5,810 nucleotides of DNA from Amoeboradix gromovi X-113 (GCA_018985225.1 JADGIF010000626.1:1-5810), one strand, 5' to 3'. Counted from the stretch's first letter, positions 164-5,810 are shown. Notes: generated from the sequence alone by a model not told the origin. Made by a program: numbers and translations.

Positions 164-313
164 AGGAACATATACATCAAATATATGCATCCTTATTCAA
201 TCCCGCCTCAGGGTAGTGAAAGCGTGAGCTTTTACTGTAGCGGAGCATCTGGCATTGCTGGTTTCTCTTTGGAAATTCTTGATTTTCTCGGAAATCAGGA
301 CTTCAAAGAGGAG
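164..313 (-). repeat. Dispersed intergenic repeat, copy 1 (inverted relative to copies 2-5)
   Basis: The reverse complement reads CTCCTCTTTGAAGTCCTGATTTCCGAGAAAATCAAGAATTTCCAAAGAGAAACCAGCAATGCCAGATGCTCCG…GCTCACGCTTTCACTACCCTGAGGCGGGATTGAATAAGGATGCATATATTTGATGTATATGTTCCT. This matches the copies at 1960, 3518, 4511 and 5582. Confidence 0.95.
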
Positions 314-545
314 TTGTGTTAATTTTGAGTCCCAAGTCTTCTGAAAAGCCCATTTTATTGGTCCCAACTAATGAAGTATTAAAGACAGCTTCCCTAGAGG
401 GCTTTGAATCGCTTAATCTTATCAAATAGTAAACGTACAACACAATTCAAACCAGGATCAGGTAATTAGAGCTAAGATATTGATCTATCATACAACAGAT
501 AGTTTTAAAGGATAAACAAACTTTTTCACACATTTTTTTATCTAT

Positions 546-1815
546 TTATTTAGTCTCTGCGTTTATCTTGAATTCCACCATCTCCAACACCCCAGCATAG
601 GTCTCTTCACCGGTTGGCAATATCTCTCTAGGGTGTAGTACAAACCCACCGCTACCCAACGAGTTTGCAGGTCTTAACTCGATTGTTAATGCAAACACCC
701 ATTCATCGTTTGGTCTAGAAATATAAAAGTAGTCACTTGCAGTACCGGTTGTGACATATAACGAAATGCTCTTCTGAGGAGTGTAATATTTGCTGTACTT
801 AGATTTCATGGTACTGCTCATCAACTGAGTAACTTCTTTAAAGTCTAATTCATTAGGAGAGTCAGCTTTTGAGTATCCATATGGGCGAAGAATTAGCTGG
901 GAATATGAATGGAAGTCAATAGCTCCAGACACACAGCACAGAGATCTCTAGTATTGATCAATCGATCTAGATTCAGGTTCGCTGAATGGTGCAGTTCCCA
1001 TGATGTCTCACTTCCGGGATTGCTTGAACTACCACCTTGTCCCCAATGTACGTCTTGAAAATTTCTATTCAAGTCCTACATAAGTAGCTATTACCACTCC
1101 TGCTATTTTATTAGATACTACACGAGTATTCTTTCTCCACATTCTGTTATTGGAATGACTGTACTCATAGCCATCCGGATTTACAATGGGAACTATAACA
1201 AACTCAGACTTGTTGAGTATGTTAACAATTCTGGGGTCATTTTGAAGAAATCCTTTGACTAATTGCCAGGTGATGTAGGCTGTCGTTGTACCAGAAATCC
1301 ATTCACGAGCATGGATCAAACTTTGAAAATAAAACTGCTTTTTCACTGACTGAGTAGGTGCAGTGAGATGAATGGCAAACAAATCTCTACCTTCGTTGGA
1401 TTTACCGATAGAAGGTACAAATTCAACCAAGTCAGGATAGATTTGGGACAATTTGAAATACCATTCCTTGATCTCACTATAAGAAGATTAATCACCAAAA
1501 AATTCGTAAAACTAGACATCAGAAGGCTCTTTAGGAGCTGGTTTTTTAAATCTCTTATTTCTTTTTAATCTCATAGTTTCCTCACGAATAAGACTTGGAA
1601 TTTCAGTATTGATAACCTGATATTTCTGGATATCTAAACAACGCAATTCAGCATATGGCATAAAAACCTCCAAACTATCATTCTTGGTGTTCCATACATC
1701 GTAGTTTTGATCAAGTTCCTCTGCCAATTCAACAGATGGATTTAAAATCTTGCACAAGATATATCCCTCAAAACTCTTTTGCAAATAAGCAAGCAGAGAA
1801 TAAAATTAGGATCAT
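546..1815 (-). pseudogene. M14A zinc carboxypeptidase (carboxypeptidase A/B-like pre-pro-enzyme); reading frame disrupted as sequenced
   Basis: The track ORFs 1512-1784, 1065-1451 and 546-932 are one gene. ATG 1815 gives a signal peptide MILILFSACLFA and a prodomain. Motifs follow in order: FFGD*SSYSEI, IHAREW (Zn ligands), NPDGYEYS, MWRKN, GV|DLNRNF, W-GQGGSS-NPGSET, PFSEPE, IDFHSYSQ (third Zn ligand), LYVTTG, TIELRP (catalytic Glu). Interruptions: extra A at 1777-1780, TAG 1512-1514, TAA 1488-1490, intron 1076-1094, 1-nt deletion near 1002-1003, TAG 948-950. It ends on TAA 546-548. The family call is secure; pseudogene versus sequencing error is unresolved. Confidence 0.85.
1076..1094 (-). 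other. 19-nt GT-AG spliceosomal intron in the carboxypeptidase gene
   Basis: The minus strand reads GGA GTG | GTAATAGCTACTTATGTAG | GAC TTG AAT AGA AAT TTT. Removing the 19 nt restores the conserved M14 motif GVDLNRNF exactly. Confidence 0.9.
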
Positions 1816-1959
1816 TCAGGAATATTTATGGCCGTCTACTTATTCAAAGTAACAAATCGCCTTTTCTTGCTTGTGGAACTACAATAATCGCCATAGCGAA
1901 TTGCCGCGTCATGTTGGATTTACTGGCAATATCGATCCAGAATTGAGCTAATGGAGAAG

Positions 1960-2240
1960 CTCCTCGTTAAAAGTCCTGATTTCCGAGTAAATCGAGACAA
2001 TCCACAGAGAAAATAGAAGTGCCAGATGCTCCGTTAAAGTGATTGCTCACGCTTTAACTACCCTGAGGCGGAATTGAACAAGGATGCAAATAATCTATGT
2101 GTATGCTCTATCTATATCCAAATGACAGCTGGTCACCTTGTACATCTTTGGCTAGTAAACGCTCCTATTTATAGATTGGAAATCAGTAGGGTTCACATGA
2201 AATGTAAAAATGTATACAAATTCGTGATGAATGGCTTGTT
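1960..2240 (+). repeat. Dispersed intergenic repeat, copy 2 (long; right boundary approximate)
   Basis: Starts CTCCTCGTTAAAAGTCCTGATTTCCGAG. It aligns with copy 4 through TCCAAATGACARCTGGTCACCTTGTA…CTAGTAAAYGCTCCTATTT…ATTGGAAAT, and similarity fades near 2225-2240. Confidence 0.93.
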
Positions 2241-2494
2241 GAAGAGCAATTTGACTGTTGTATAGCTCTGCATAGATACATGCAAGACAGTACAGTTATA
2301 TTATTGACTGGTACATCCCGATCTGACCTAGTTTGCTTGGTTTTAAACTGGTGCGCTGAATGGCGTTTGCTATTCAATGCAATAGCAGGTACTCTGCAGG
2401 ATTCTCATCTTTCGTGCAGTAACTAAAGCGTATATTTAACAGGTTTCCACAAACACAAAATTCTATTTTTAACACATTTATTAGTCTGCAGGTC

Positions 2495-3151
2495 TTAATC
2501 ACTTGCCATTTGTTTGAACTAGTTTTTGTCTAACCAAAATGGATACTTTGGTAATATGCTTTTAATTGTAGACACTTGCTCTGGAGTGAGCTTGATATCC
2601 ATTTTTGTGACAGGACTTCCTGTGTAAAATGCTGTCGCAATAGCTGTAACATCTTCCATATATTCATCTGAACCATCTGAATCTTTAAATATTTTTAAAA
2701 GTTCCGGTTGTTCTAAAGCCCATTTTGCAATTTTTTCATATCTTTCATAAGATGCTTGATCAGAAACGGCCTTCCAATATTCATCGTACTTAGCCCTATC
2801 TTCAGGAGGAACTTCCAGATTGCCGTTCTTGTTAAAACGGAGTTTGGCTAGAGTAGGGTGAAGCTCTCTCAACTGCATCAGAAGTGACTCATCTGATTTA
2901 GTTGAAGGTAGTTCCCCAAGAGTTGTTCCTTGAGGGTCGGTACTTTCAGGCCCTGGATAAAAAACCGGTTGTTCATCTTCAAATAAGTTAGCAGGCATAC
3001 GTGCAACAGACGTGGGTCTACCAGCCACACGCGCAACTGGATTAACGAAACCACTTGCGGGATTCGCGGATACAGCTAACAGTGCTGCTGCAGCTGCTGC
3101 TCTGTGGGCATTGACGGGTAAACTCACAACAATGGAGCACAAGTACAACAT
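2495..3151 (-). CDS. Hypothetical, probably secreted protein (210 aa to TAG at 2519; 218 aa to TAA at 2495 if TAG is read through)
   Basis: Uninterrupted ATG-initiated ORF with a hydrophobic N-terminus (MLYLCSIVVSLPV), an Ala run, a Pro-rich linker and a charged, helical-looking C-terminal half. After the TAG the frame continues FKQMASD to TAA, followed closely by AATAAA. I recognise no family. Confidence 0.8.
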
Positions 3152-3517
3152 TTATGACTTAGAAATTGGTAGGGTATTTAAATAAAATATTGAATCATCT
3201 GACATGAAAGTGCCAATTAGAAGTGTGAAATATCACATAATTCGAGTCACGAAATACTCTTAAAAGTCAAAACAGAGCATAAGAACCCAAAATATTTGCA
3301 AAGCGCACTCATTATCAGTAGAATACTTTATTTGATTAAAACTTATTAGAGGGATCAAGAAATTTACCCACAGGTACATAATCATCAGGTGTATGGGCCA
3401 CATATTTAGACTTGCCATTATTTCCTCTTATCTCTTTTAGTGCAAATGGGTACTCCTGTAAAAACTGAGCCTTCTGCTCTTTTGACATGCTGTTCGAAAG
3501 ATTTAAATTATGCATGA

Positions 3518-3629
3518 CGTTAAAAGTCCTGATTTCGGAGAAAAAACAGCAGTGCTAGATGATCAGTTACAGTGATTGCTCACGCTTTCACCACCCTGAA
3601 GCAAGATTGAATATGGATGCATACTTGAT
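3518..3629 (+). repeat. Dispersed intergenic repeat, copy 3 (truncated, internal deletion)
   Basis: Reads CGTTAAAAGTCCTGATTTCGGAGAAAAAACAGCAGTG…GGATGCATACTTGAT. It lacks the first 5 nt and the segment between the two GAGAAA motifs. Bases 3547-3623 are identical to 4566-4642. Confidence 0.95.
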
Positions 3630-3681
3630 AAAAAAAAGTAAATAGAGTTATATGCATTTCGCTGTTAACATTCTGATTTAT

Positions 3682-4347
3682 TTAAAACTTGTAATCACTC
3701 TTTAATCCAAGACACTCGTGCATTTTAACAAAATTGTATCCTTTGGCCTTGTAGCTAGTGACAATTTCATCCATGTAATTTAGCCATAATTTGTCAGTCT
3801 CATCAGCAAGTATGATGTGGCCGGCGTTAGGCTTATTAAGTGGAGCTAGGATGCTTTTTACAGACTCTTCGTCACTTACAACTGTAGGTTCATCAAAAGG
3901 GTTGCTATCAACATCCCATTGAACGACAGTCATGCCCAACTTGGATCCTTTAACAACATTTAAAGAGAAGTCATCGTAAGCATCATACGGGAATTGAAAA
4001 TAATTTGTCCATCTTTGGGTTTCCTTGTAGATCAAATTGTTGGTTTTCTTAACTTCGTCATAGATCGACTTTTGACCGATTAACTGAGGAAAATACTTGT
4101 GGGAGTAACTATGGCTACCAATAGAATGTCCCTGATCATAAATAGATTTTACCAATCCTGGGTACTTTTCCATTTCTTTACCGACCACGAAGAACGTTGC
4201 GTTGATGCCATTTGATTTTAAAGCAGCCAAGTGACTATGCGTATTTAAAGAAGGACCATCAACTATAGTCAAAGCGACCATATTCTTGTTTACGCATTTC
4301 CGGTGAATCTTTTGAGACATTGCCAAATTCAACTACAAACTAAGCAT
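3682..4347 (-). CDS. Polysaccharide/chitin deacetylase-like protein (CE4, NodB homology domain) with degenerate catalytic motifs
   Basis: Motifs: C…MVALTIVDGP, ATFFVVG, GHSIGSHSYSH, FQFPY, VQWDVDS, GHIIL, GYNFVKMHECLG. The likely start is ATG 4347 (MLSL*LNLAMSQKI, signal-peptide-like, in-frame TAG at 4333-4335). An alternative start is ATG 4372 with a 28-nt GT-AG intron at 4333-4360. It ends on TAA. Confidence 0.88.
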
Positions 4348-4510
4348 TTCTCAGAACTACCTGCATTTCCATCTTATAATGGTGAATCCCTTGTATTTGA
4401 AATATGATTGGATATTCATCACTAAATTTATGCAAACAGCTTGCAAATTCATTTGATATTATTGCCTCGCTAGTTAGCTTGTTGGTGTATTCTTCAAATT
4501 CATTTACAAA

Positions 4511-4812
4511 CTCCTCGTTAAAAATACCCAATTTCCGAGAAAATCGAGAATTTACACAGAGAAACCAGCAGTGCTAGATGATCAGTTACAGTGATTGCTC
4601 ACGCTTTCACCACCCTGAAGCAAGATTGAATATGGATGCATATACTTGATGTATATACTTGCTGCCATATGCTCTCCATCTAAATCCAAATGACAACTGG
4701 TCACCTTGTATATGTCTGACTAGTAAATGCTCCTATTTGAGCTATTGGAAATATCGTTAGAATTCAGATTAAGATATAAAAATGCATGCTGATTCTCAAT
4801 AAATAATTTATT
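4511..4812 (+). repeat. Dispersed intergenic repeat, copy 4 (longest; right boundary approximate)
   Basis: Starts CTCCTCGTTAAAAATACCCAATTTCCGAGAAAATCGAGAATTT and contains all blocks seen in the other copies. It aligns with copy 2 to about 4800-4812. Confidence 0.95.
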
Positions 4813-4848
4813 CAGGAAATGAAGAATCTGTGATAAATAATAACAGAT

Positions 4849-5292
4849 TTACTATTTCGCATATTTTTTGGTAAAATCTTTGGCGTTCTTTAGAAACTCG
4901 CCTTTGTCAGTTCTATATAGTTCTTCTGGCTCAATTGCTATAGGATCCTCTAGATTAGGCTCCAGCAACAGCTGTAAAATAGCAGTAATTAATAAACTTA
5001 TTCTAGAGGTTGGTTTCCAATTATTTAGTAAACTAAGACAAACATTACCATCATTATCAAAATTTGGATGATAAATCTTGGTTTTAAACAATATTTTAGG
5101 TGGTTTAAACGGAAAATCCGAAGTAAAAATTATATTGATTGAAAATATTCCTTTTTCATAAGGAGTGCCCACAGGTCCAGTTATCTTTACAAGCCATGAT
5201 AGAACATCGTCTTCATTAGGTATGATATGCACTCCTTTAATTGGATTCTACATTAAATTCTTTAATTCCACTTGAATCCTTTTGACAAACAT
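4849..5292 (-). CDS. Ubiquitin-conjugating enzyme E2 (Ubc4/5-like size and motifs, divergent)
   Basis: ATG 5292 gives MFVKRIQVELKNLM*NPIKGVHIIPNEDDVLSW (in-frame TAG at 5248-5250), continuous with track ORF 4852-5232. It contains GPVGTPYEKGIF, FPFKPPKILFKTKIYHPN, catalytic GNVCLSLL, WKP, PNLEDP and AKDFTKKYA. Length is 146-147 aa and it ends TAG TAA. Confidence 0.93.
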
Positions 5293-5581
5293 GTTTGGGG
5301 GAGGATGTTCAGAATTATAAACCTAAAGAGTTCGTTGACAAATGCTTGTGTATTAGCAGATATTACCAATACTTGTGCGGCAAATATAACTTTTCACAGG
5401 TTAATCGAAACTGTTTATTTTGTGACTTTATGAATGGCAGTCTTATTGATGCTGACTAGTGCACCACTTTTGCCGATTCTTCTCTGTGTGTATTTAAAAA
5501 CAAATAGGAACTGATCAGAACATTGTTTAATTTTGTAGAAGGTGCTCGAATTCCTGATTATTTCAAGACGTCCTTAAGTTT

Positions 5582-5776
5582 CTCCTCGTTAAAATTCCTG
5601 ATTTCCGAGAAAATCGACAATTTCCACAGAGAAATTAATTTTGTTAATCTCTCCGTTACAATGATCGCTCACGCTTTCACTACCCTGAGGCGGGATTAAA
5701 TAAGGATGCATATACTTGATGTATATGTTCCTTGCTGCCATATGGTCTCTATCTATCTCCAAATGACAATTATCAC
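5582..5776 (+). repeat. Dispersed intergenic repeat, copy 5
   Basis: Reads CTCCTCGTTAAAATTCCTGATTTCCGAGAAAATCGACAATTTCCACAGAGAAA…GCTCACGCTTTCACTACCCTGAGGCGGGATT…CCAAATGACAA and then diverges. Confidence 0.95.
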
Positions 5777-5810
5777 AAGTGTAGGTTTCTAAATTAGTTT
5801 TCTTTAGAGT

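Follow-up and report, generated by a model that had tools for sequence, protein, structure and literature searches.

In 2013, Bao and Jurka (PMC3627910) described Fanzor2 nucleases carried by IS607-type elements, in eukaryotes as well as giant viruses (ISvMimi, ISvNY2A_1 and ACa-1). IS607 elements have neither terminal inverted repeats (TIRs) nor target-site duplications (TSDs), and they insert via recombination between matching dinucleotides (PMC3627910; bioRxiv 10.1101/2023.08.09.552727). The chytrid Spizellomyces punctatus has 134 'ghost' Spu-1 loci that lack the nuclease gene, their source being a Fanzor1 element flanked by inverted repeats (Saito et al. 2023, PMC10432273), and the published maximum is 122 Fanzor copies per genome (PMC10530073). 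Here we examine a repeat family in a 5,810-nt stretch of DNA from Amoeboradix gromovi X-113 (GCA_018985225.1, JADGIF010000626.1:1-5810), hereafter 'the window', which is one whole contig (C907) of a 10.55-Mb assembly with 1319 contigs. With a probability of roughly 0.8, the repeats arose by deletion from an IS607-type transposon with a gene for the RNA-guided nuclease Fanzor2, and are now dead and non-autonomous. Repeats or transposable elements are not mentioned in the A. gromovi genome paper (PMC8371127), and our literature search found no paper reporting this family or naming both Fanzor and a sanchytrid.

A first-pass annotation of the window had proposed five copies of a repeat lying between genes. 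All five were recovered by repeat search and BLAST with E-values of 1e-26 to 1e-88, far beyond chance. Four of them are oriented alike and one (164-313) is inverted. They are listed below by left end (LE) and right end (RE), with positions in the element ('el') counted on a 600-bp reference copy (L013:1093-1692).

164-313, plus strand: copy 1, part of the RE (el 451-600, 89% identity over 151 nt), ending AGAGGAG at 313
1960-2262, minus strand: copy 2, both ends retained; RE 1960-2108 (el 453-600, 88%), inner scraps 2106-2159, LE 2206-~2262
3518-3629, minus strand: copy 3, an RE fragment alone (el 463-595, 77% identity)
4511-4833, minus strand: copy 4, both ends retained; RE 4511-4701 (el 409-600, 86%), a 28-nt inner piece 4702-4729, LE 4734-~4833
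5582-5810, minus strand: copy 5, RE plus the zinc-ribbon coding part (el 373-600, 90% over 229 nt), cut by the contig end

Copy 5, which had been taken to stop at 5776, thus runs to the last base of the contig, and it holds a 57-aa open reading frame (ORF) with the RuvC-III motif DRDHMAARNI. The sharp terminus, CTCCTCG or CTCCTCT, lies at the same base in four window copies and the sequence beyond it is unrelated between copies, just as first described. Alignment scores for the LE are 62 in copy 2 and 85 in copy 4, compared with a mean of 29 and a maximum of 52 in the null (shuffles of another window segment). For copy 3, the LE-side alignment score of 36 is within the shuffle null and no significant LE remnant was found; in copies 1 and 3 the left end is lost or beyond recognition. 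Copy 1 is weak on its left-end side, with a degenerate extension leftwards to ~100. The final 5 nt of the RE are missing from copy 3, as are 20 nt in its interior. At the inner edge of this copy (3625-3629), the element interior meets the 3′ flank of a deacetylase gene in a TTGAT microhomology. Large internal deletions are present in copy 2, and the blocks deleted in copies 2 and 4 are different. The remaining spacers of the window (G+C 36.5%) are unique DNA without other repeat families, and the window gave no Rfam match at a relaxed threshold and no tRNA in a tRNA scan.

When alignments were extended in loci fetched from the genome, a sample biased toward the best-preserved copies, a complete mini-element of ~600 bp with two defined ends was obtained. 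It consists of the LE, the last ~135 codons of a Fanzor2 gene (zinc ribbon and RuvC-III) and ~125 nt of non-coding RE. Read on the strand opposite to the window's plus strand, the LE starts as CAGCTYGATTGTTTTCTTGAATAAATC. It begins with CAGCTYGA and includes TGAATAAA, which provides stop codons in two frames and a poly(A) signal, AATAAA. The RE finishes with ...TTTTAACGAGGAG, beyond which conservation falls abruptly, and the boundary is also sharp at the LE. The sharp terminus in the window is therefore the RE of a Fanzor2 element viewed antisense. After NIYIKY, 40 codons stay open up to a TAA 7 nt before the RE terminus; because this stretch carries no coding signal, it is counted as non-coding RE.

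The ORF of the reference copy (L013:1294-1698) matches Pfam PF07282 (Cas12f1-like TNB zinc ribbon) with an E-value of 2e-20, and its alignment to the mimivirus L79 Fanzor2 (PDB 9b0l, 520 residues) covers residues 430-515 with an E-value of 2.5e-11. The latter alignment spans the TSQTC...C..C finger (TS-x-x-C4 type) and RuvC-III. Window copy 5 and the reference copy both have DRDHMAARNIYIK as their RuvC-III segment, and its counterpart in L79 (9b0l) is DRDENAAKNI. L79 is the top solved relative both of the family fragment and of the protein of a sister element described below (C542), the Fanzor2 assignment being made by structure-database match. On these matches, the element appears nearer to Fanzor2/IS607 TnpB than to Fanzor1 or Cas12. 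A complete nuclease with the RuvC-I Asp and the RuvC-II Glu was not found in the family, and those parts are deleted in all window copies. Since they are lost, the repeat is a dead derivative rather than a working Fanzor.

The ends were examined in 18 full genomic copies. No TSD beyond chance and no TIR was found in them, there is no inverted k-mer of 7 or longer between the ends, and the element has no poly-A or simple-repeat tail, no TG..CA ends and no CTRR end, in agreement with the absences listed in the first-pass annotation. In a test for Helitron-type ends, the element was found to run from CAGCTYGA to AACGAGGAG, not from TC to CTRR. AG occurs at both junctions, as nCAG|CTYGA at the LE and as CGAGGAG| at the RE. 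Variation at the final three RE bases (15-24%) exceeds that at the positions before them, and in 17 of the 18 copies the first base flanking the RE is A or T. At the site of the copy-2 junction, an intact carboxypeptidase paralogue on another contig (C844) is uninterrupted and reads CAG directly before it (one case, 80% identity). Nested insertions, which could serve as proxies for empty sites, were absent from the sampled loci. A direct repeat common to LE and RE (CTCGATT...TTTTCT...AAATCA) was considered and set aside as merely marginal (p ~0.04). Taken together, these end features appear to agree with the description of IS607 elements. Among the mechanisms initially listed, site-specific recombination is the best fit, in the form used by IS607/serine-recombinase elements, from which TIRs and TSDs are inherently absent.

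That the end opposite to the sharp terminus varies in position had suggested a one-ended mechanism. The reach does differ between copies, but the end is not open: copies 2 and 4 keep the LE (CAGCTYGA) and differ by internal deletions. In the genome the fixed left end is present in at least 30 copies, and most copies still hold it. A duplication reveals when the truncation took place. Segment 3625-4701, which contains the deacetylase gene, its 5′ flank and the RE part of copy 4, recurs as a 1079-bp duplication with 94% identity on C493 (L056:1502-2578). Because copy 4 and the C493 copy lie within the duplicated segment, they descend from one insertion. Copy 4 keeps the LE with two internal deletions, whereas its C493 counterpart ends at reference position 342; as this same-insertion pair differs in its reach on the left-end side, truncation came after insertion. 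Thus, the ragged inner edges are internal deletions made after insertion, and with a second defined end in place the one-ended mechanism is not supported. Incidental to this, both edges of the 1079-bp duplication fall inside element copies, one of them at the TTGAT microhomology.

The family is abundant. A 302-bp copy used as query gave 663 candidate places in the genome, 40 of which were scored and were mostly 85-89% identical. The 44-nt RE core with at most 3 mismatches gave 354 matches (182 forward and 172 reverse), as opposed to 0 for the reversed control, and PF07282 gave 560 candidate places, many overlapping the repeat DNA matches. Only one of the five window copies passes this core filter: copy 1, which matches the core exactly at 186-229. 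The window copies are among the more decayed, copy 4 being 81.5% identical to the majority sequence compared with a mean of 92% for 38 sampled copies. About one fifth of the first 100 listed RE-core matches lie less than 400 nt from a contig start. This clustering indicates that the assembly breaks at the repeats, so that the copy counts are lower bounds; the family is probably a main cause of assembly fragmentation. This supports the earlier supposition of an unclassified mobile element with a very high copy number (at least 354-663 copies) and with survival confined to the spaces between genes. One copy per spacer is not a rule, since two sampled spacers hold two copies, tail to tail with 54 bp between them (L036) or head to head (L037). 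Hundreds of copies with uniform ends and unrelated flanks strongly suggest a past burst of nuclear transposition.

The coding remnant was tested for selection. In the zinc-ribbon/RuvC-III codons of 38 aligned copies, third-position changes number 220, compared with 82 and 103 at the other two positions, and the synonymous fraction is 0.54, compared with 0.20 expected under neutrality. Variants common to at least two copies are skewed to the third codon position (16/27/39, p 0.008), whereas private variants are flat (32/21/33). Such a pattern is to be expected where a working nuclease was encoded by several master lineages and the dispersed copies decayed neutrally.

The genome has 12 places with a resolvase domain (PF00239). 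C542 (L051, G000:C542:1-6000) carries a 171-aa resolvase ORF at 2770-3282 (minus strand) and a 671-aa Fanzor2 ORF at 1476-3488 (minus strand), the former sitting in another frame inside the 5′ third of the latter. The 671-aa ORF has HTH_OrfB and TNB domains, and its best solved relative is again mimivirus L79. From its gene content, C542 is apparently an intact IS607-like unit, TnpA plus Fanzor2, of a sister family. Its similarity to the repeat family is 66% identity over 127 nt, in the zinc-finger region only. No other copies of the C542 element were present among the fetched loci, and its protein shares no more than 38% identity with its nearest public relatives, which are from metagenome and brown-alga records. 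According to the public name of that protein, its contig has a k-mer coverage of 0.86. Should coverage be higher on other contigs, the C542 DNA may be that of a minor component, for instance a virus or a contaminant. The longest relic of the repeat family itself is on C385. It is broken by stops and retains ~180 Fanzor-homologous codons, next to an open frame that carries the RuvC-I motif ALDPGVRKF. This relic (L066:343-1016, minus strand) abuts an inverted resolvase fragment (L066:1012-1170, plus strand), and the arrangement is either a rearranged parent element or two collided elements. Close relatives of the family were not found in viral or metagenome contig collections.

The IS607-type origin would work as follows. 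The copies would have been moved in trans by the serine recombinase TnpA, acting at a short matching motif, and the RE would formerly have encoded the guide (omega) RNA. Persistence in spacers only would result from selection purging insertions into genes in a gene-dense genome.

Several observations weigh against this origin. The search for a full-length parent, which the first-pass annotation had recommended, yielded the sister C542 with recombinase and Fanzor2, but no intact parent of the repeat family was found at 8 resolvase loci and ~10 mid-Fanzor loci. Only ~10 loci retain the middle part of the Fanzor gene. No TnpA was found inside a copy of the repeat family, no LE adjoins the 8 resolvase loci in the right orientation, and the C542 element has no end motifs in common with the family. 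The AG/CAG target is read from the one 80%-identical paralogue mentioned above, which stands in for a true empty site. Finally, for the putative omega RNA the consensus fold reaches −14.7 kcal/mol and the covariation term is 0.06, the variation being too small to exclude structure. Compensated changes, even single ones, occur in just 4 of 24 predicted pairs. Single-sequence z-scores average about −1.4 on each strand, and the fold does not outperform shuffles or the antisense strand.

Besides the repeats, the window contains the following.

546-1815, minus strand: M14 zinc carboxypeptidase pseudogene, 80% identical to the intact C844 paralogue (G000:C844:220-1647, L068)
2519-3151, minus strand: 210-aa ORF without a Pfam match and, as far as tested, present once in the genome
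3336-3515, minus strand: 59-aa ORF of uncertain reality in unique DNA, its ATG 3 nt from the truncated RE of copy 3
3682-4320, minus strand: NodB-type polysaccharide deacetylase gene, intact in both copies (window and C493)
4852-5292, minus strand: ubiquitin-conjugating enzyme (E2/UBC) pseudogene with an in-frame TAG at 5248-5250

The strict alternation of genes and repeats noted at first holds in that the copies lie between genes. On the other hand, two of the 'genes' are pseudogenes, and the spacer 3152-3335 is copy-free if the 59-aa ORF is real. The carboxypeptidase unit has in-frame stops at 1512-1514 (TAG), 1488-1490 (TAA) and 948-950 (TAG), where C844 has TGG, TAC and TAC, along with frameshifts from a 1-nt deletion near 1000 and a 1-nt insertion near 1778. 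At the position of the UBC stop, the intact paralogue on C678 (L055:1905-2413) has a Glu codon (LMENPIKG). A ciliate-type code with TAA and TAG as sense codons was considered for these stops and rejected, given the codons that the paralogues carry at the same positions. The in-frame stops of the window are thus pseudogene mutations, not evidence of a variant genetic code.

The carboxypeptidase unit also contains a 19-nt GT..AG intron at 1076-1094, between ...IAGV and DLNRNF. The GT..AG intron of the C844 paralogue agrees with it in site and length but not in inner sequence, which supports real splicing. The N-terminus of the 210-aa ORF is Ala-rich (AHRAAAAAALLAVSANPASGF).

Three neighbouring units, the carboxypeptidase, the deacetylase and the UBC, have paralogues elsewhere, each adjoining an element, and the contig looks like a patchwork of duplicated segments. 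In the carboxypeptidase and UBC paralogue pairs, the elements are in opposite orientation and 30 nt and ~4 nt apart, respectively. Being opposite and offset, they were inserted independently after the duplications. Such independent insertions are direct evidence of mobility and of repeated landing near gene ends. A patch rich in duplicates and pseudogenes, under weak selection, is sufficient reason for five copies in 5.8 kb.

Exaptation as gene-end modules, in which the LE (with TGAATAAA) and/or the RE act as terminators or promoters for the neighbours, is unlikely, though its chance is slightly higher than that of the other alternatives. It would explain one copy per spacer and the co-orientation in the window, where all five copies are oriented like the gene on the LE side. 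The LE contains AATAAA, and in 5 of 20 co-oriented cases it starts no more than ~25 nt from an upstream stop codon. One of the five is copy 4 in the window, whose LE begins ~19 nt past the stop of the UBC pseudogene. Outside the window the bias disappears. In ~40 sampled loci, orientation relative to the nearest long ORF is 23 same and 19 opposite on the RE side and 20 and 12 on the LE side, neither being significant. Moreover, an apparent LE remnant at the stop codon of the deacetylase gene is not above the shuffled null, the distance from the RE to the next ATG ranges from 3 to 290 nt, and the copies are decaying. The co-orientation of all five window copies is most simply chance or local history. 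The functional boundary or cassette unit that had been offered as an option is not upheld either, since orientation is unbiased, decay is neutral and some spacers have two copies.

A slim chance, below that of exaptation, is given to live ghost guide loci. Here nuclease-less copies would express RNAs from the RE, whose 3′ extensions into the flank would guide a surviving Fanzor2 in trans. The RE is indeed the part retained by every copy, even the most truncated; there is at least one apparently intact Fanzor2 ORF in the genome (C542), and functional ghost omega RNAs have a precedent in Spu-1 of Spizellomyces (PMC10432273). Nevertheless, the RE gives no covariation or strand-specific folding signal, and private mutations accrue evenly. 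The window copies are 77-90% identical to the reference, and copy 3 has a deletion inside its RE. Furthermore, the sole intact Fanzor2 belongs to the other family, with an RE unrelated at the DNA level. Slimmer again is the chance of the extended form, in which the RE stubs make up a genome-wide ghost omega-RNA library, each with a different flank, that programs a surviving Fanzor2. If true, this library would be a natural eukaryotic multi-guide system for RNA-directed DNA cutting or homing, spread by a serine-recombinase transposon.

We consider it very improbable that the repeats form a recombination or cassette system, serving as sites for excising, duplicating and shuffling gene-sized units like integrons or composite transposons. 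The carboxypeptidase, deacetylase and UBC paralogues on other contigs do each adjoin an element, and both ends of the deacetylase duplication are within elements. Yet those ends are at internal, non-homologous positions (the TTGAT microhomology and a deletion junction), not at element termini. The elements at the carboxypeptidase and UBC paralogues are independent and opposite in orientation, and in these two older pairs homology stops where gene constraint stops. In addition, the window has no recombinase gene, and element orientation is random across the sampled loci.

A 5′-truncated retroposon (SINE- or LINE-like, that is, a short or long interspersed element) or a Helitron would give one fixed end with variable reach on the other side and lack TIRs and TSDs, but either can be dismissed: most copies have a defined second end, the internal ORF is a TnpB/Fanzor2 fragment and not a reverse transcriptase or Rep-helicase, there is no A-tail or microsatellite tail, the ends are CAG...GAG rather than TC...CTRR, and a tRNA-like part and an Rfam match are absent. 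End structure and ORF content rule out SINE, LINE, long terminal repeat and Helitron readings alike, and with them the retroposition and rolling-circle mechanisms suggested at first.

Eukaryotic Fanzor2/IS607 elements have been known mostly as few copies in giant viruses and amoebae, and nuclear proliferation had little evidence. The copy number found here is many times the published maximum of 122, though almost all copies are nuclease-less stubs. Their left and right junctions form a large natural collection in which a target motif is readable. In practice, the family also yields spurious ORFs of ~140 aa in ORF-based protein sets.

The family can be compared with four known systems. First, the likeness to integron attC cassettes is superficial and consists in the gene-repeat-gene alternation of the window; the repeats here are not co-oriented with genes in the sampled loci and have no attC-like palindrome. 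No adjacent integrase was noted beside the repeats, no search aimed at integrases having been made. Second, the family resembles miniature inverted-repeat transposable elements in being small, non-autonomous, high-copy deletion derivatives of a DNA transposon near genes. It differs from them in having no TIR and no fixed-length TSD and in retaining a recognisable coding fragment. Third, it shares with IS607/Fanzor2 elements a TnpB-like nuclease with a C4 zinc ribbon and RuvC-III, closest among solved proteins to mimivirus L79, the lack of TIR and TSD, and a conserved non-coding stretch from the ORF end to the RE; the sister element on C542 combines the serine-recombinase TnpA with Fanzor2. Unlike those elements, nearly all copies here are stubs of 150-600 bp from which TnpA and ~80% of the nuclease gene are missing, an autonomous member of the exact family was not found, and there are at least 354-663 copies in 10.5 Mb rather than the few of viral and amoebal IS607.

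Fourth, ghost Spu-1 is the closest published analogue. Both are short (~550 nt in Spu-1), nuclease-less elements of a zoosporic fungus that keep both transposon ends and the omega-RNA region, putative in the A. gromovi family, and outnumber the gene-bearing copies. Spu-1 derives from Fanzor1 with 30-nt inverted repeats, whereas the A. gromovi family is of the Fanzor2 type without inverted repeats. The Spu-1 omega RNAs were shown to work, while the present family is known from sequence and its copies look decayed. Its copy number, on the other hand, is several-fold higher than the 134 of Spu-1.

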